Shown here piece by piece: positions 1 to 60,460 of a DNA stretch of 64,000 bases. Location: sequence record LC494302.1; one strand, 5' to 3'. Positions within the stretch are counted from its first letter, which is position 1. The number at the start of each line of letters is the position of its first letter. A model generated the notes under the pieces. The model worked only from the letters and a program-made list of their open reading frames with translations. It ran no database searches and had not been told where the DNA came from. The position numbers and the translations under genes are program-made.

Positions 1-3000
1 ACATCAGAACCAGTTTTAACTGCACCAGAGGTTGTTAGAGAACCTAAAGTTGTAGCACCAGTTACACCTAATGTTCCACCAATTGTTGCGTTATTGGTAA
101 CTGCTAATGCAGCACCTTCACCATTAAGAGCGATTGATGGAGCAGATACTGCACCAGTTACGCCTAATGTGCCACCAATTGTTGCGTTGCCATCTGAATG
201 TAGAGTTGTAGCTACAGAAAGACTGTTAGCAACTACATCAGTACTAGCTAAATCCAATGCACCTGGGGTTAATGTACCAGTAATGTTAACATTATTACCA
301 AAGGTTGCTGCACCAGTCACATCTAGTGTAGTACTAAATGTACCAGAGGTTGCAGAGATTGCACCTGAATCTAGTGATCCAACAGTTGCTTTACCAGTTA
401 CACCTAAAGTTCCACCAACAGTTCCATTTGTGGTTACATCCAATGTACCAGTACTTAGTTCTTGTGCGGTTACCTTACCGGATGCAGTAACAGTTGAAGT
501 GGAAACGCCACCAGTTAGAGTACTAGCACCAGTAACACTTAATGTGGTTGCAGCAGTTACGCTATTTACGCTAAGATCAGCACCGGATAAGTCCAAACCA
601 CCTTCAGGAACAAATACACCCTTAACAGTTAGTTTTTGTACTGTACTATCACCTGTTACATCCAAGGTAGAAGCAGTTAAACCACCATTCATACTTGCTG
701 CACCAGTAACACCTAGTGTAGTGGTTACAGTAGCACTATTAAGTGTTGAACTACCAGAAATATTAGCACTAGGAGCAGTAATAGTTCCAGAATCAACTTG
801 TATACCACCAGCAACAACCTGAATTCCACCAGCATTAACTGTTAGTTTACCAGCAGTATTCAATGTATTTGAAACTGTTGTTGCACCAGTTAAAGTTGTA
901 GTACCAGTTACACCTAAGTTACCAGAAATAGATGGACTACCTGTAATATTACCAGTAGTTAGTATCAAATCAGTACCTACGGTAGTGGAGCCAGTACTTT
1001 CTAGTGTCACACCAACGATGTTTGCAGAACTTAGGTTAATAGTACCATCAACAGTTAAGTTACCTTGAACGGTTGCATCACCTAGAGAAGTTAATGTCTT
1101 CACAGACACATCAGTTGTGCTAAGATCAATAACACCCGCAGTTAGTGTTCCAGATACTGCTAAATTACCAGTAATCGCGGTATTTTTAGTAATGGATACA
1201 TTTTCTGCCGCTGAAGTAATAGAACCAACAGTAAGTACACCACCAACAGTTGCGTTATTAGTTACATTTAGAGCAGTTCCAACACCAGATAGTGTTGCTG
1301 ACCCACCAGTAATTGCACCTGAGATTGAAGCTGTTGCTGCTGAAACATCACCAGAAACTACTGCATTTGTTGCATTTAGAGCAGACACTGTAACTTCAGT
1401 ACTTTGAACTTTAGGTAGAACGTTGATACCTTCTGCACTACTAACTGTAATAATACCAGTACTTGTTAGAGATTTAACAGATACATCAGCACCACTTAAA
1501 TCAACTGTACCAGAAACAACAAGATCTCCACCAATATTTGCTCCAGCGGTAGTAGTAATGGATTTTGCACTTACATCAGTTGTGCTCAAATCAATTGCAC
1601 CTGGTGTTACTGTACCAGAAACTGTTAGGTCACCAGTAATAGATGTATTATTGGAAATAGATACACCATCAACGTTACTAATTGTTGGGGTTTCTACAGA
1701 AACTGCTTTAACTTTACCTGAAGAAGTTACGTCAGCTACGGTAGATGCACCAGTAACATTCAAATTAGTAATATTTGCAGTTGTTGAACCAAGGGTTGCA
1801 ATAGTTGCATCAGTACTTTGAAGTTTAGGTAGAACACTACTAATTGTGGATTCATTACTAACAATTGCACCAGTACTAGTTAAAGATTTGACAGTAACAT
1901 CAGCCGTAGTAAGATCTACTGTACCATTAACAGTTAGGTTACCACCAATAGTTGCACCAGCAGTAGTAGTAATGGATTTAGCATTAACATCAGTTGTTGC
2001 TAGATCGATAGAGCCTGGAATAACTGCACCAGTAACGGTTAGGTCACCAGTTACATTTGTATTATTGGAAATAGTGACACCACTTGCATTTGAAATGGTT
2101 GGGGTAACCAACGATGCAGTTGTAGTTTCACCAGTTACAGTTAAAGTTGACCCAACTAGAACAGATGAGCTTGAGTAAATTGTACCCAAATTAGCAGATC
2201 CGGTAACAGTTATATCATCAGCATTAACAGTAGGAGCCGTTATGGTAGTACTATTAAGTACTGGAAGTACGTTAGCATTAACAAGATCATTACTTTTAAC
2301 AATACCAGAAGTAGTTAATGATTTAACATTAAGGTCGGCTGCTGATAAATCAAAAGAGCCTTGAACTACTAAATCACCACCAATAGTTGCACCAGCAGTA
2401 GTAGTGATTGATTTAGCATTAATATCGGTAGTGCTCAAGTCTAGAGAACCAACAGTTAAGCTACCAGTAATATCAACATTTTCTGTAAAGTTAGTATTAC
2501 CACTAATAGTTGGTGCAGTCAGAGTTGTTGCACTAATATTAGTACCGTTAATTGTTTGTCCACTTACAGTCCCACTCGCAGTGATAGTAGGAGCCGTTAC
2601 TTCAGTAGATGCACTAATTGTTGGTGCAGATACAGAAGTTGTACCAGTAATAGAACCAGAACTTACTGAACCAGCGGATAATGCACCAGAAAGAGTTGCA
2701 GTTGTACCAGCAATATCACCAGTAACAGTTAGTTTAGCACCCACGGTAGTGTTACCAGTACTTTCAAGTGTTGCACCTTTAATATTTGCTGCCGCGACAA
2801 CAGAATTAGGTGTTAGATCCTGCCCACTAACATCAACAGTTAGCCCAGTTACTGTTCCAGTAAATTCAACATCATTAAGAATTGCTTTACCACCAACTTG
2901 TAGGAATGGTGTACCTGGAGCTTGTGTTTCGTTACCAGTAATAGTTAGGTAATCTAGTTTGTTTAGACCGTTACCAGTAATACCATAAGTGGAAAGAGAA

Positions 3001-4343
3001 GCGTTACCGAAAGTTGCTGTTTTAAGAACGTTCAATGTAGAAGGAGAAACGACTTCTGATTGAACTTCGTTAGGTAGAATAACTGTTGGGCGTTGACCTG
3101 GTGCAGTATATCCAAAACCTAGTTTCACTGCCGCATCTTGACTATTTTGACCTAAGCTGATAGCTTTAAAGGATGCAGTACTGTTATAACCAGTAATATT
3201 AGAACCAAGAGTAACACCACCAACTAATGAAGTTACACCAGTAACGTTCAAAGATACTGCATTAATATCGTCTAGTTGGAACGTTCCACCAAGAAGACCA
3301 GAAACATTAATGTTATTAAAATTAGCAGTACCAGTACTTTCGATATTTGGAATAGTTGCAGTTCCGGTTACTTCAAAGTCAGCAACTTTAGTTTTTCCTT
3401 TTTGAACTTCTAATAGTGGTGTGTCTGGTGATTGTGTATTGTTACCAGAAACTGTTAGATAATCTAATTTGTTTAGACCATTACCAGTAATACCATAAGA
3501 AGATAATGACGCATTACCAAAAGAAGCAGAGGTCAATACTGTCAAGTTTGCAGGTGACATTAGCTCGGACTGAATTTCGTTTTGTAGAATAACAGTTGGG
3601 CGTTTACCAGGAGCAGTGTAAGGGAAGCTTAATCTGAAGGTTTGTGATTCAGAGTTAGAACCAATACGAATGTCTTTAAAAGTAGCAGTACTGTTAATAC
3701 CAGTTACGTTAGCACCGAAAGTTACTGCACCTTGTTGGTTAGATGCACCAGTAACGTTCAATGTTACTGCATTTAAGTCAGATAGATTAAACTCACCACC
3801 AAGTGTACCACTAATTGTCACATCGTTAAATGTAGCAGTACCAGTACTACTAATATCTGTTGTACTTACATTAGTAATTTCTGCGGTATTAGCATTAATT
3901 TTATCAAATGCAGCAGTAGTCCCAACATCAGCAGTAATATTACCTTTAAATGCTGTTGTTTCAGCAACTTCTAAGTTTTTAACTTTAGTTGCTTGTAGAG
4001 TGGTTGTACCAGCAGTTTGTGTAAAATCAGAACCAACTGATACAGTACCGTTAAAGGTAGCGTTTGAATTAATTGTTGCTGTATCAGACCCGACAACTGC
4101 ACTACCGATTGTAGTATTACCCTCAACACCAAGACCACCAGAAAGTGTTGCTTTGCCACCTACATCTAAAGTAGATGTAATGTTGGCAGTTGATGATTCA
4201 ATGGCAGTAAAAGTTGCATTTGCAAAAGTTACAGTACCATTTACAGTTAGGTTATTGTTGAAAACAGCATTTCCTTTGACTAAAAGATCCTTACCAACCG
4301 TACCAGCACCAGTAATATCTAAGTCAGTTTTTATTGAGTACAT
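1..4343 (-). CDS. Very long repetitive tail fibre/appendage protein, partial (runs off left edge), >1,447 aa
   Basis: ATG at 4343 with a GGAG RBS upstream (MYSIKTDLDITGAGTVGKDLLVKGNAVF...). The same frame reads ...GSLTTSGAVKTGSDV at the window edge, and spot checks between were open. T/G/V/S/N-rich with short beta-strand periodicity. Missing from the ORF track because there is no stop in the window. Confidence 0.85.
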   Translation of the reverse strand, partial: MYSIKTDLDITGAGTVGKDLLVKGNAVFNNNLTVNGTVTFANATFTAIESSTANITSTLDVGGKATLSGGLGVEGNTTIGSAVVGSDTATINSNATFNGTVSVGSDFTQTAGTTTLQATKVKNLEVAETTAFKGNITADVGTTAAFDKINANTAEITNVSTTDISSTGTATFNDVTISGTLGGEFNLSDLNAVTLNVTGASNQQGAVTFGANVTGINSTATFKDIRIGSNSESQTFRLSFPYTAPGKRPTVILQNEIQSELMSPANLTVLTSASFGNASLSSYGITGNGLNKLDYLTVSGNNTQSPDTPLLEVQKGKTKVADFEVTGTATIPNIESTGTANFNNINVSGLLGGTFQLDDINAVSLNVTGVTSLVGGVTLGSNITGYNSTASFKAISLGQNSQDAAVKLGFGYTAPGQRPTVILPNEVQSEVVSPSTLNVLKTATFGNASLSTYGITGNGLNKLDYLTITGNETQAPGTPFLQVGGKAILNDVEFTGTVTGLTVDVSGQDLTPNSVVAAANIKGATLESTGNTTVGAKLTVTGDIAGTTATLSGALSAGSVSSGSITGTTSVSAPTISASTEVTAPTITASGTVSGQTINGTNISATTLTAPTISGNTNFTENVDITGSLTVGSLDLSTTDINAKSITTTAGATIGGDLVVQGSFDLSAADLNVKSLTTSGIVKSNDLVNANVLPVLNSTTITAPTVNADDITVTGSANLGTIYSSSSVLVGSTLTVTGETTTASLVTPTISNASGVTISNNTNVTGDLTVTGAVIPGSIDLATTDVNAKSITTTAGATIGGNLTVNGTVDLTTADVTVKSLTSTGAIVSNESTISSVLPKLQSTDATIATLGSTTANITNLNVTGASTVADVTSSGKVKAVSVETPTISNVDGVSISNNTSITGDLTVSGTVTPGAIDLSTTDVSAKSITTTAGANIGGDLVVSGTVDLSGADVSVKSLTSTGIITVSSAEGINVLPKVQSTEVTVSALNATNAVVSGDVSAATASISGAITGGSATLSGVGTALNVTNNATVGGVLTVGSITSAAENVSITKNTAITGNLAVSGTLTAGVIDLSTTDVSVKTLTSLGDATVQGNLTVDGTINLSSANIVGVTLESTGSTTVGTDLILTTGNITGSPSISGNLGVTGTTTLTGATTVSNTLNTAGKLTVNAGGIQVVAGGIQVDSGTITAPSANISGSSTLNSATVTTTLGVTGAASMNGGLTASTLDVTGDSTVQKLTVKGVFVPEGGLDLSGADLSVNSVTAATTLSVTGASTLTGGVSTSTVTASGKVTAQELSTGTLDVTTNGTVGGTLGVTGKATVGSLDSGAISATSGTFSTTLDVTGAATFGNNVNITGTLTPGALDLASTDVVANSLSVATTLHSDGNATIGGTLGVTGAVSAPSIALNGEGAALAVTNNATIGGTLGVTGATTLGSLTTSGAVKTGSD
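1390..2450. repeat. Degenerate intragenic tandem repeat, 414-bp then 435-bp period (138/145 aa)
   Basis: cagtactttgaa.tttaggtagaac at 1397 and 1811; gtagt(a/g)at(g/t)gattt at 1552, 1966 and 2401. Confidence 0.8.
2941..3710. repeat. Intragenic duplication, 510-bp period (170 aa)
   Basis: Blocks starting at 2941 and 3451 both encode YTAPG(Q/K)RPTVIL.NE.QSE..SP....FGNASLS.YGITGNGLNKLDYLT on the minus strand. Confidence 0.85.
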
Positions 4344-41507: not shown

Positions 41508-41983
41508 ATATCAACCATATTTAATTTACCGTCCTTAATCAGCTTTCTAGCTTGCTTTACACGAGCAGTAGTGTTACTACCAGGGACAACTCCTAACCCT
41601 TCCAGAATCGCGTTTTGCTGTGTTGCTGGAAGCCTTTTAAACTTATTAACATCCACAGTTAGTGCAGTGTGATGTATAACTTGTTCATCGTCAGGAATGC
41701 TGTTATTACGCTCTAAGTAATCAGCAAGATTTCTGAGTACCTCATATAATGGTTTATCAGTTAAGTGCTTCATATATCGATTGAAGCTGTTTTGTACCTT
41801 TCCTTCCCAAGCATTGACTTCATTTTGAAGAACTTGTCTACAATGTTGGTTACCATAGTGGTAGTGATCCAGTACTGGTTTAGTTATTGGTTCTTTAATT
41901 ATAGGATCTATTCCATTTTGTTTCTTTAGCAATTCGTTTCGATAGTTTGCAGCATCCTTACTATCTTTTAATCTTTTTTTCAT
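41492..41983 (-). CDS. Endonuclease VII-like Holliday junction resolvase (gp49)
   Basis: QNG...LDH.H...R.VL...NAWEGK catalytic pattern, followed by L.NL..YL and a C-terminal helical domain as in T4 gp49. Confidence 0.8.
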   Translation of the reverse strand: MKKRLKDSKDAANYRNELLKKQNGIDPIIKEPITKPVLDHYHYGNQHCRQVLQNEVNAWEGKVQNSFNRYMKHLTDKPLYEVLRNLADYLERNNSIPDDEQVIHHTALTVDVNKFKRLPATQQNAILEGLGVVPGSNTTARVKQARKLIKDGKLNMVDIKKGS

Positions 41984-42013
41984 AATTCCTCACCAAACTA
42001 TTTGTTATCAAAA

Positions 42014-42021
42014 TATTTATA
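42014..42021 (-). promoter_or_regulatory. Late promoter TATAAATA (endonuclease VII)
   Basis: Exact consensus. Confidence 0.75.
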
Positions 42022-42075
42022 GATTAGTTATTTGCAATATTTTAAGTACTTAATGAATATTTTTATAAAAATAGT

Positions 42076-42103
42076 GAGACAACTTTAAAGTTTGTGCTAT
42101 AAT
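42076..42103 (+). promoter_or_regulatory. Promoter GAGACA-N16-TATAAT with extended -10, facing an ORF-free region
   Basis: gagaca actttaaagtttgTGc TATAAT; same architecture as the clpA, gp55, dsbA and clamp promoters. Confidence 0.75.
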
Positions 42104-42104
42104 G

Positions 42105-42608
42105 TTTGTTGTAGTAATGACAATCCTGTTGAATGCAGAAATGCATATAAATTAGAACCTGATCCTATCGAAAATGTAGATGGCAGATGAGCAGTTCAAC
42201 AGTGCGATGAGCAAAAGAAACCCGTTAGATGTGGGCATAGTTTGAACCCCTCACGGCAATGCGGCTCAATAAAGAACTCCGATAAGCATACAGAGAGTTC
42301 CTAGATAGACATATAAGGATCGCACCTTACCAGATTTGCTAAGGGAGTTTATTAAGTGATTTTAATAAACAGCCTGAAGTTTGATTGTATAGACTTTCAG
42401 GTGAGTGTCAGGATGATTAAGACTGACGACCGTTGCACATGACTGCGATAGAGAGAAACAGAGCAACCCGCTTTCGTTCTTAATATATTTTTAAGAAATT
42501 CGCAATACAATAAATGCTGAAACCATCAGCGTCAAGAAATAGAGACTTCATTGTCTCTTTTTTATTGTCTTCATTCCCCTGCGGGGGGATGAAAATGTCC
42601 TCAACAAA
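42105..42608 (+). ncRNA. Candidate large structured non-coding RNA (~460-500 nt), family not recognised
   Basis: No ORF of 60 aa or more; visibly less AT-rich than its flanks; at least ten helices found by eye; candidate pseudoknot; upstream promoter; terminator-like hairpin at 42541-42563. No folding or Rfam search was run. Confidence 0.6.
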
Positions 42609-42782
42609 TCCCGTCAAGTATTAAATCTTTTAAAGTTCTTTATAATTAATTTAATTAAATGAATATGAGTTACGTAGTAACGAATATTCTTCAGCTAACG
42701 AATGAAATGAGTTAGATGAATCCAATAATATTAAAATTAATCCTTTCATAATTCAATTCAAATAATTCTGTAGTTTAAAACC

Positions 42783-42807
42783 AAAAAAACCAGCAACAAT
42801 GTGCTGG
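42783..42807 (-). terminator. Intrinsic terminator for the gp26 operon
   Basis: Minus strand reads ccagca-cattgt-tgctgg-ttttttt. Confidence 0.7.
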
Positions 42808-42818
42808 CTATATGAAAA

Positions 42819-43028
42819 TTAGTGCTTCTCGTTTTGTTTTTTAATTTTTTTATTAAAAGACTTAACTAATAAGTCTCTATCTATTAATGGCATATTAAGG
42901 AGTGTTCCATAGTCAATGTTATCCATATATACAGAACATTCCATTAGTGCATTTTTGATTTCTGACTTATTCAGTTCTATCTCCTTCAGTACTTCTTGTA
43001 TTTCTTCAGGAGATGACTGGAGAAGCAT
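42819..43028 (-). CDS. Small baseplate-assembly-associated protein
   Basis: 69 aa, translationally coupled to the gp26-like gene (TAATG overlap). Confidence 0.55.
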   Translation of the reverse strand: MLLQSSPEEIQEVLKEIELNKSEIKNALMECSVYMDNIDYGTLLNMPLIDRDLLVKSFNKKIKKQNEKH

Positions 43029-60070: not shown

Positions 60071-60359
60071 TATATATAAGCGTATTGGTGAAGTATTAGA
60101 AGGTAATGGTATCATTAATTCTGTACTAGCATATGATAATGATGAAGAAGTAGTTCTAATTGGTGCGGGTTTTACTCGCACTGGTTCAGTGGAAGTTGAC
60201 GGAGAGATTGCTGATGTTTACACTCTTGTGAAAAAGCGTAAAGTTGTTTTTGTCGATGATGTACATACATTAAAAGACTTGAAAAAATTACGAGATAAAA
60301 TTGGCATGAGTTCTACAATTGATAAGCCTTATCTTCAACGTTGGAATACAAAATACTGA
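60063..60359 (+). CDS. Hypothetical protein
   Basis: About 98-aa ORF overlapping the preceding stop, with an AAGGT RBS. Confidence 0.65.
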   Translation: MSNIYKRIGEVLEGNGIINSVLAYDNDEEVVLIGAGFTRTGSVEVDGEIADVYTLVKKRKVVFVDDVHTLKDLKKLRDKIGMSSTIDKPYLQRWNTKY

Positions 60360-60368
60360 TAAAAAATT

Positions 60369-60396
60369 GAGACAAGCATCATTTTTGAGATATAAT
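60369..60396 (+). promoter_or_regulatory. Promoter GAGACA-N16-TATAAT
   Basis: gagaca agcatcatttttgaga TATAAT, upstream of the clamp-like gene. Confidence 0.7.
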
Positions 60397-60460
60397 GGTG
60401 CTTGTAGTAATCTTACATAAAAACATTTTTTGATTAACAAATAAAACGGAGAATTATATA

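Follow-up and report, generated by a model that had tools for sequence, protein, structure and literature searches.

Escherichia phage SP27 (LC494302.1, genus Asteriusvirus) has a genome of 347 kb, and its terminal 64 kb, a stretch of 64,000 nucleotides (nt) referred to below as the window, raises the question of what is encoded by its one long gap between genes. This gap, at positions 41984-42818, had been singled out in a first-pass annotation of the sequence as the only large non-coding one, and nowhere else does the window run for 300 nt or more without an open reading frame (ORF) of at least 60 amino acids (aa); a second apparent gap, at 2953-3669, was rejected as part of a long tail-fibre gene that continues beyond the edge of the window. 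The sequence of the true gap and its flanks matches SP27 at 100% identity (window coordinate = SP27 coordinate - 283,152). It is bordered on one side by an endonuclease VII gene and on the other by a 69-aa gene, after which comes a baseplate-hub gene; all three are on the minus strand. The first-pass annotation had proposed that a promoter in this interval drives a highly structured, undescribed jumbo-phage non-coding RNA of about 500 nt. Conservation, covariation, strand asymmetry and absence from Rfam 15 and from the literature searched all support this proposal. The single-locus picture that went with it needs correction: the copy in the window is one of four paralogues in SP27, and these belong to a family that extends across the RaK2-like phages.

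Evidence for the family came from a blastn comparison with 50,697 phage records. Matches were found in 72 of these, all of them jumbo phages save for two short fragment records, and the full-length matching records measure 310-386 kb. Their hosts are Escherichia, Salmonella, Klebsiella, Erwinia, Yersinia, Cronobacter, Pectobacterium and Serratia, and two records are labelled Xanthomonas. In distant genera the identity is 67-77% and the match is confined to window positions 42140-42625, with the flanks unaligned, which provides a clean phylogenetic footprint of the proposed RNA. An nhmmer search with the RNA unit returned E = 2.7e-124. Full-length records of Asteriusvirus each have 4 places detectable by blastn, and most other full-length records have 5; in the RaK2/K64-1 group there are 2. 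SP27 carries exactly four copies, all on the plus strand, at about 89.0, 191.1, 246.4 and 325.3 kb, and the gaps that hold them are unannotated and measure 650-830 bp. Scans for motifs in IMG/VR and in metagenome contigs added further copies, mostly on contigs of about 350 kb, and the hallmark motif had 0 matches in 185,579 bacterial and archaeal genomes (GTDB, one per species). Removal of copies at least 97% identical to another left 44 full-length copies of 477-574 nt, and their alignment (A2) underlies the comparative results that follow. The conserved unit extends from just after the -10 hexamer to an invariant 3' CGUCA, positions 42104-42616 of the window, which amounts to 513 nt here and to 477-574 nt in the family. 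Comparison of these sequences establishes a conserved, promoter-equipped, multi-copy family of predicted plus-strand RNAs that is restricted to RaK2-like phages (and related metagenomic contigs).

When the window sequence is folded alone, the plus strand yields -136.6 kcal/mol, with z = -3.86 and 0/100 shuffles as good, so that folding is better than in shuffled controls; the corresponding z for the minus strand is -2.76. RNAalifold, applied to the 44 copies, returned 64 pairs, 39 of them with compensatory changes. Additions from a helix scan and a mutual-information scan gave a structure of 103 pairs, including pseudoknots. This structure is 94.1% paired, compared with 76.9% for column shuffles and 38-44% when it is slid by 1-3 columns. 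Changes on both sides were seen in 73 of the 103 pairs (750 cells), and the covariation score was 0.459 vs 0.164, with 0/500 shuffles as high. The kind of exchange involved is illustrated by the pairs 42210:42266 (AU 22, UA 22), 42192:42204 (UA 19, AU 14, CG 11), 42444:42504 (UA 23, CG 15, AU 5) and 42386:42509 (CG 22, UA 22).

The first-pass annotation had listed thirteen helices, and its complementary segments are all present in the sequence. Eleven of these helices are supported by covariation in the family: 42126-33/42195-202, 42134-45, 42208-12/42264-68, 42274-79/42295-300, 42314-29, 42373-401, 42407-27, 42432-67 and 42477-97, the hairpin 42347-70 at its base, and the terminator hairpin 42541-63, which 23-24 of the 44 copies possess. 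The remaining two have weak support. The GC-rich hairpin at 42570-93 is conserved but nearly invariant, and the one at 42516-30 exists in the family in a different register. Since these helices were drawn from one sequence, the covariation of 11/13 in relatives amounts to an independent, out-of-sample test.

Which strand is under selection may be judged from the mismatches that are tolerated. Among the paired cells there are 310 G·U and 71 A·C, and this excess argues for selection on a plus-strand transcript, in agreement with the direction of the promoter. About 100 alignment columns are invariant, many of them unpaired. No ORF is conserved in the family, the longest ORFs being 29-102 aa with varying strand and position, and the indels are not multiples of three. 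A protein-coding reading was rejected, with codon-phase entropies of 0.69, 0.83 and 0.83 and a period-3 power that ranked 20th of 257. Compensatory change, tolerance of G·U and lack of a conserved ORF are the marks of a structured non-coding RNA, and the family, to judge from its alignment, bears all three.

The pairings supported by the family outline a fold with several crossings, all of its elements being on the plus strand. At the 5' end, the helix P1 (42126-33/42196-202, spanning 42126-42202) shows both-side changes in 7/8 pairs and encloses two hairpins. One of these, at 42134-45, is capped by a GAAA (GNRA-type) loop, and the other, at 42160-85, has a stem 42164-69/42179-83 and a conserved loop, GAAAAUGUA, at 42170-78; in helices 1-3 the pairs changed on both sides number 7/8, 5/5 and 5/5. 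The 3' strand of P1 is flanked by a 3-bp helix, GCA/UGC (42191-93/42203-05, spanning 42191-42205), whose columns 135:148 (UA 19, AU 14, CG 11) are 100% paired. Together with P1 this helix can form an H-type pseudoknot, as its 2-nt linker is able to cross the deep groove. The next helix, 42208-12/42264-68 (42208-42268), encloses 42222-25/42253-56, helices 5 and 6 being 100% and 99.4% paired, as well as a variable hairpin that takes two alternative forms across the family. It is crossed by a long-range pairing of AUG 42259-61 with CAU 42310-12 (42259-42312), in which columns 229:292 are GC in 33 copies and AU in 11, with none broken.

Downstream of this region, the hairpin 42274-79/42295-300 (42274-42300) covaries in 5/5 stem pairs. 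A contact between AGCA in its loop, 42285-88, and UGCU at 42337-40, just 5' of the invariant UAAGGGAG, is a moderately supported candidate: the mutual information at 254:323 favours it, and self pairing averages 4.0 bp vs 3.3 bp for cross pairing. The hairpin UAAGG/CCUUA at 42314-42329 (helix 10) is 98.9% paired with 2 covarying pairs. It is followed at 42347-42370 by a hairpin of variable length, 9 bp here, in which base pairs at the base covary (helix 11); in most other copies this hairpin holds an insertion of about 45-70 nt with the module UACAAUAUAGAUCCGUCCAAAAUU. The 12-bp hairpin at 42372-42401 (helix 12; 10/12 pairs covary) presents a conserved loop, UUGAUUGUAUAG. Loop nucleotides AUUGUA 42384-89 pair with UACAAU 42506-11 to form PK1 (42384-42511; helix 13), which is 99.2% paired and covaries in 5/6 pairs. 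The PK1 sequence differs among the four SP27 paralogues, being AUUGUA, AUCGAA, GUCAUA and AUUGCA.

After one more hairpin, 42406-09/42424-28 (42406-42428; helix 14), comes the pseudoknotted 3' core at 42432-42504. Here GUUGC 42432-36, paired with GCAAC 42463-67, crosses two helices, UGCGA 42444-48/UCGCA 42500-04 and GAGAG 42451-55/CUUUC 42471-75, and a hairpin, 42477-80/42494-97, lies within the core. Pairing is complete (100%) in helices 15-17 and reaches 90.9% in helix 18; the covarying pairs in these four helices number 3, 4, 2 and 3, respectively. Beyond the core, the conserved hairpin UUCAUUCCCC-UGCG-GGGGGAUGAA (42570-42593; helix 20) is 89% paired, its changes are mostly from G-C to G·U, and it contains an invariant G run. 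The unit ends in a conserved single-stranded tail of invariant columns, CCUCAACAAAUCCCGUCA (42598-42616), whose AUCNCGUCA repeats a motif at 42525-34.

Two features of these peripheral parts deserve description in their own right. Paralogues differ in which of two peripheral hairpins holds a module of about 25 nt, UACAA(U/G)A(U/A)AG(A/U)U(C/G)CGUCCAAAAUU. The 246-kb copy of SP27 (L007 46370-46943) has two of these modules, and the L006 and L004 copies also carry it. From the window copy it is absent, at 42347-70 and 42477-97 alike; the 94%-identical orthologue of phage UE-S1 has it in the 42477-97 hairpin. It looks like a swappable tertiary-contact or binding module. The sequence AUC(N)(N)CGUCA, moreover, appears twice, at 42525-34 before the terminator and at 42606-16 at the end of the tail, the variable positions being U/U in 36 copies and C/C in 8. 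The pair may represent processing or binding sites, and its joint change may just reflect relatedness.

Three of the tertiary or closing pairings that had been suggested from the single sequence did not survive comparison. The pseudoknot 42202-08/42319-25 is 56% paired, equal to shuffles. A closing helix 42105-11/42602-08 is 51% paired, no better than shuffles, and another, 42119-24/42564-69, is 57% paired vs 53% in shuffles. With these helices falls the idea that alternative closings compete with the terminator. The long-range pairings that the family does support are instead 42384-89/42506-11, 42444-48/42500-04, the crossing of 42432-36/42463-67 with 42451-55/42471-75, 42259-61/42310-12 and 42191-93/42203-05.

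How might such an RNA be transcribed? The promoter (42075-42103, plus strand) is located where it had been placed at first, pointing into the gap. It consists of a TGAGACA box at 42075-81 (GAGACA 42076-81), a 16-nt spacer and an extended -10 element, TGcTATAAT, at 42095-42103, with TG at 42095-96 and TATAAT at 42098-103; the arrangement may be written TGAGACA-N13-TGcTATAAT. Taken as a single sequence it is not above chance, the scan finding 9 promoter-like sites vs 8.8 expected. In the family, TGnTATAAT stands upstream of 42/44 non-redundant members and carries one substitution in each of the other two, TATAAT is exact in 43/44, and a TG(A/G)(A/G)AC(A/G) box lies at a fixed distance, about 14 nt, upstream of TGnTATAAT, so that the promoter precedes 44/44 copies. 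Transcription is predicted from these elements to start near 42108-42111. In phages CBB and GAP32, "divergent RpoD-like" promoters with a TGAAACG -35 element are mostly upstream of DNA-synthesis genes (Buttimer et al., PMC5259590), and by its motifs the promoter of the RNA is of this same class. The earlier suggestion of co-regulation with replication genes thus obtains indirect support, through the position of this promoter class in CBB (PMC5259590). Directly upstream of the 89-kb copy, at SP27 87924-88889 (L004 37924-38889), there is a gene for a sigma-70-family factor (Pfam regions 2, 3 and 4; PHROG 351), which may be the reader of TGAAAC-type promoters. Within the window, 60359-60411 resembles the promoter region, with 76% identity over 54 nt to 42065-42118, and is probably another promoter of the TGAAAC/extended -10 class.

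The other transcription signals lie toward the 3' end. An intrinsic terminator, AGAGAC/GUCUCU followed by a U run, is located at 42541-42563 on the plus strand, and its stem covaries where it is present (helix 19). A counterpart is found in 23-24/44 copies, and the remaining copies run directly into the conserved tail. Past the RNA, at about +40 to +150 nt from the conserved CGTCA, every copy is followed by a module of small hairpins (e.g. CTGAATTGAGTTGATTCAG) and a promoter of the form TTGAC(A/T)-N17-TAnnAT (L018, L027, L050, L036 and others), the spacer of which contains an inverted repeat with covarying arms (CATTC/GAATG, CATAC/GTATG, CTTGC/GCAAG). In the window a degenerate remnant of this module, with small hairpins, a sigma-70-like promoter and the inverted-repeat spacer, occupies 42640-42730 (plus strand); its promoter has decayed, and the gene that comes next is encoded by the opposite strand. 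The downstream module may belong to the RNA or lie outside it.

The distribution of copies in genomes bears on both the age and the mode of action of the family. In a tree of the 44 copies each paralogue class holds several genera, which implies that the duplications are old. The three Asteriusvirus copies that cluster together in this tree suggest later gene conversion or duplication. The gap between the endonuclease VII and baseplate-hub genes holds a copy in Escherichia, Cronobacter, Serratia and Yersinia phages, and a copy upstream of dam is common to SP27 (191 kb) and RaK2 and is syntenic. The four SP27 copies have no protein neighbour in common; they are found next to the sigma factor gene, an HNH endonuclease gene, genes of no known function, and endonuclease VII with the baseplate hub. 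The nearest tRNA gene to the 89-kb copy of SP27 is about 12 kb away. The gene downstream of the window copy is convergent, as it is throughout this paralogue class in several genera, and in other classes the RNA is separated from the next gene by a conserved promoter distinct from its own. In GenBank records such as PP886230.1, PQ390715.1 and OR699282.2, two to four "hypothetical proteins" are placed across an RNA gene, and the UE-S1 record annotates a "repeat_region" within one; these entries are likely mis-annotations.

Comparison with known RNA families was negative. No family in Rfam 15 matched the window at gathering score, including ROOL, GOLLD, OLE, raiA, HEARO, introns, RNase P, tmRNA and 6S, and at E <= 10 the interval 41900-42900 produced only chance-level small-RNA and terminator matches of at most 23 bits. 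Of the three other SP27 copies, the two that were scanned, at 89 and 191 kb, were also unmatched. That the element shows no motif of tRNA, tmRNA, RNase P or group I/II introns was confirmed by ARAGORN, which found 0 tRNA or tmRNA genes in the window, by Rfam and by alignment with rnpB. RNase P RNA was rejected on a Smith-Waterman score of 20 against E. coli rnpB, vs 18 ± 2 for shuffles, and on the lack of an Rfam match at E <= 10; a group I/II intron was rejected for want of an Rfam match and because the element, which lies between genes, begins at a promoter of its own. In the literature searched the family is not described under any name, and a genomic-language-model preprint that was checked does not mention phages. 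Elsewhere in SP27, 132548-134554 (L005 32548-34554) is a 2-kb stretch without annotated genes and with no Rfam match, which contains only short tandem repeats of 24 and 32 nt at L005 33628-33727.

The reading that we favour, and hold with some confidence, is that 42075-42616 is a stand-alone gene for a large, trans-acting non-coding RNA that is compactly folded and comparable in kind to ROOL and GOLLD. Transcription would begin near 42110 at the TGAGACA-box/extended -10 phage promoter and yield a transcript of about 450 nt or, with read-through of the terminator at 42541-63, of about 510 nt. Covariation shows the fold of this RNA: its 5' part forms a compact domain that P1 (42126-33/42196-202) closes, its 3' part forms another around the knotted core at 42432-42504, and at least four long-range or pseudoknot pairings link the two; about 100 of its nucleotides are invariant. 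The RNA would presumably be produced from early to middle infection, while replication genes that have promoters of this type are active, and may act in trans as a folded particle. Such a particle could be a scaffold for a ribonucleoprotein, an RNA resembling a ribozyme, or one that self-assembles in the manner of ROOL or GOLLD. The density of pseudoknots and the invariant unpaired nucleotides suggest a scaffold that binds protein or ligand, a ribozyme, or an RNA capable of self-assembly. A role as leader of a neighbouring gene is disfavoured by the convergent next gene, the separate promoter in other classes and the lack of a common protein neighbour. A bolder version would make the family a new functional class of large RNA, a ribozyme or self-assembling particle needed by giant phages of Enterobacterales for genome replication or host takeover, with 4-5 paralogues that are non-redundant and self-specific by virtue of their pseudoknots; a variant would make the copies structured RNAs that define the replication origins of 350-kb genomes. 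This we offer tentatively, as a possibility that is more doubtful than the trans-acting gene as such.

Several observations weigh against the trans-acting RNA gene. No transcript of any member is on record, and no RNA-seq of Asteriusvirus or of another RaK2-like phage was found in the literature. The argument for action in trans leans on negatives such as the failure to find a cis target, nor does the evidence point to a particular protein partner, ligand or catalytic activity. The statistics are generous to the fold: kinship among the 44 sequences causes the shuffle control to overstate significance, and part of the structure was picked on the same alignment that was used to score it. The ends of the RNA pose a difficulty as well. 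In the window copy the conserved tail, 42570-42616, sits downstream of the terminator, so that the real 3' end is ambiguous. At the 5' end of several paralogue classes a GC-rich hairpin with 6-9 U follows directly after the -10 hexamer, upstream of the RNA core, as in the 191-kb copy of SP27 (L006 41086-41125) and at the 5' ends of L059, L051, L032, L047, L036, L034 and L057. This arrangement resembles an intrinsic terminator about 40 nt into the transcript; an attenuator, a stem that protects the 5' end and the terminator of an upstream operon are all conceivable.

Among the alternatives, the one with the strongest circumstantial case would have the copies encode replication-origin RNAs, each marking one of the 4-5 origins of a 350-kb genome, with the 3' part forming a persistent RNA-DNA hybrid in AT-rich downstream DNA that primes the leading strand. 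The ColE1 RNA II and the T4 oriF/oriG transcripts set the precedent: they are promoter-driven, a few hundred nt long, and start replication by folding or hybridisation, and in T4 several dispersed origins are served by middle promoters (oriF, oriG). The promoter of the RNA is of the class that stands upstream of DNA-synthesis genes in CBB and GAP32, and the length of the RNA is like that of ColE1 RNA II, about 550 nt. The 4-5 copies are dispersed; in SP27 the smallest gap between them is 55 kb (p ~0.05 for four random points on a circle, by our own calculation). The DNA just downstream of the RNA is AT-rich (GC 0.24 at 42600-42800), there is an invariant G run near the 3' end, and the phage encodes an RNase HI. 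All the same, priming from an R-loop requires neither a fold with multiple pseudoknots nor some 100 invariant nucleotides, and about half of the copies terminate ahead of the AT-rich DNA. GC skew tracks gene orientation and gives no signal at the four loci, initiator sites and iterons were looked for and none found, and the search for tandem repeats detected just one trivial 13-nt repeat of 2.2 copies. On balance we regard origin RNAs as unlikely. It is more unlikely, in our estimation, that the element acts in cis on transcription, the nascent RNA being a put-like processive antiterminator that modifies RNA polymerase, or a signal sensor that brings about read-through of the terminator at 42541-63, either of which would control downstream genes or antisense transcription. 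A layout of promoter, structured RNA and terminator would suit this role, as would the many copies co-oriented with the next gene and the conserved sequence past the terminator, which implies read-through. Leaders, riboswitches and antiterminators were nevertheless rejected on the convergent downstream gene of the window class, the separate promoter of the others and the half of the copies without a terminator to regulate; neither the alternative closings nor any other alternative pairing competing with the terminator is conserved, and the RNA is 5-7 times larger than put or EAR RNAs.

We give little credit to the notion of a selfish or mobile ribozyme-like element, such as a degenerate intron or homing element, that has multiplied within the genome. 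Multiple copies per genome, the clustering of the three Asteriusvirus copies, which suggests recent duplication or gene conversion, an HNH endonuclease gene 0.5 kb downstream of the 89-kb copy and the AUCNCGUCA direct repeats that flank the 3' hairpins would all fit it. Yet copies occupy syntenic intergenic sites across genera, each has its own promoter, and there are no flanking exons, no endonuclease or reverse-transcriptase gene common to the copies and no Rfam intron match. Least credible of all is a repeat that works at the DNA level, as a site of protein binding or recombination, or else the remains of a protein gene, in either case without an RNA function. The short hypothetical proteins of some records and the repeat_region of one might be cited in its favour, but compensatory changes and the asymmetry of G·U vs A·C point to selection on a single-stranded plus-strand transcript, and no reading frame is conserved.

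If the gene does specify a trans-acting RNA, its interest is considerable. Large intricate RNAs are rare, and nearly all of those that are understood are ribozymes or cores of essential machines. The few phage examples, ROOL and GOLLD, come from poorly tractable hosts. The phages that carry the present family can be grown in culture, on Escherichia coli and related genera, and the record of phage Sharanji lists K-12 MG1655 as the host, so that deletion, complementation, probing and cryo-electron microscopy are feasible. The family is multi-copy, old and under strong purifying selection at paired and unpaired positions, which implies a function important enough for 4-5 versions to be kept. Annotators may note, too, that "hypothetical proteins" overlie these RNA genes in several database records.

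It remains to compare the family with known systems. One set of candidates for comparison is ncRNA001-004 of PA5oct, four transcripts of 236-619 nt from ORF-free regions that were detected by RNA-seq, two of them abundant (Lood et al. 2020, PMC7318152). PA5oct, a Pseudomonas jumbo phage, is a distant relative of the RaK2-like phages, and the likeness lies in the origin of its ncRNAs from ORF-free regions; they were rejected as homologues by nhmmer and by a search for the hallmark motif, and the four show no paralogy among themselves. The 3' hairpin of ncRNA004, TTCCTTCCCAAACGGGGAGGAA (L029 1172-1219), is weakly like the family hairpin TTCATTCCCCTGCGGGGGGATGAA at 42570-93 (nhmmer E = 0.055), the rest being dissimilar. 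Bacterial RNase P RNA (M1) shares the size class, a pseudoknotted core and, by eye, short motifs (ACGACC, AGAGAG, ACCCG), but the SP27 RNA is multi-copy. The ColE1 RNA II and T4 origin transcripts have no pseudoknotted core conserved across genera. The pRNA of phi29 is a phage-encoded structured RNA in which covarying loop-loop pairings mediate ring assembly; it differs in being about 170 nt long and single-copy and in serving a phi29-type packaging motor, whereas the RaK2-like phages have a T4-type terminase, and homology with it was compared through Rfam alone.

Comparable in kind are ROOL (RF03087) and GOLLD (RF01998). Neither shares sequence or structure matches with the SP27 family, and they belong to Firmicutes, rumen or lake organisms, in contrast to the Enterobacterales hosts found here, where 4-5 diverged paralogues per genome occur away from tRNA genes. 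This is a new family of large structured phage RNA, of a general kind that is known, with no relative among the ornate phage ncRNAs. Common to ROOL, GOLLD and the SP27 RNA are a length of several hundred nt, an ornate form, many unpaired nucleotides that are conserved, pairings of the pseudoknot type, and a stand-alone gene encoded by a phage. Contacts between copies of ROOL and of GOLLD reportedly build RNA-only cages. In the SP27 family PK1 and PK2 covary, and PK1 could likewise form between molecules, since covariation fits intramolecular and intermolecular pairing alike.

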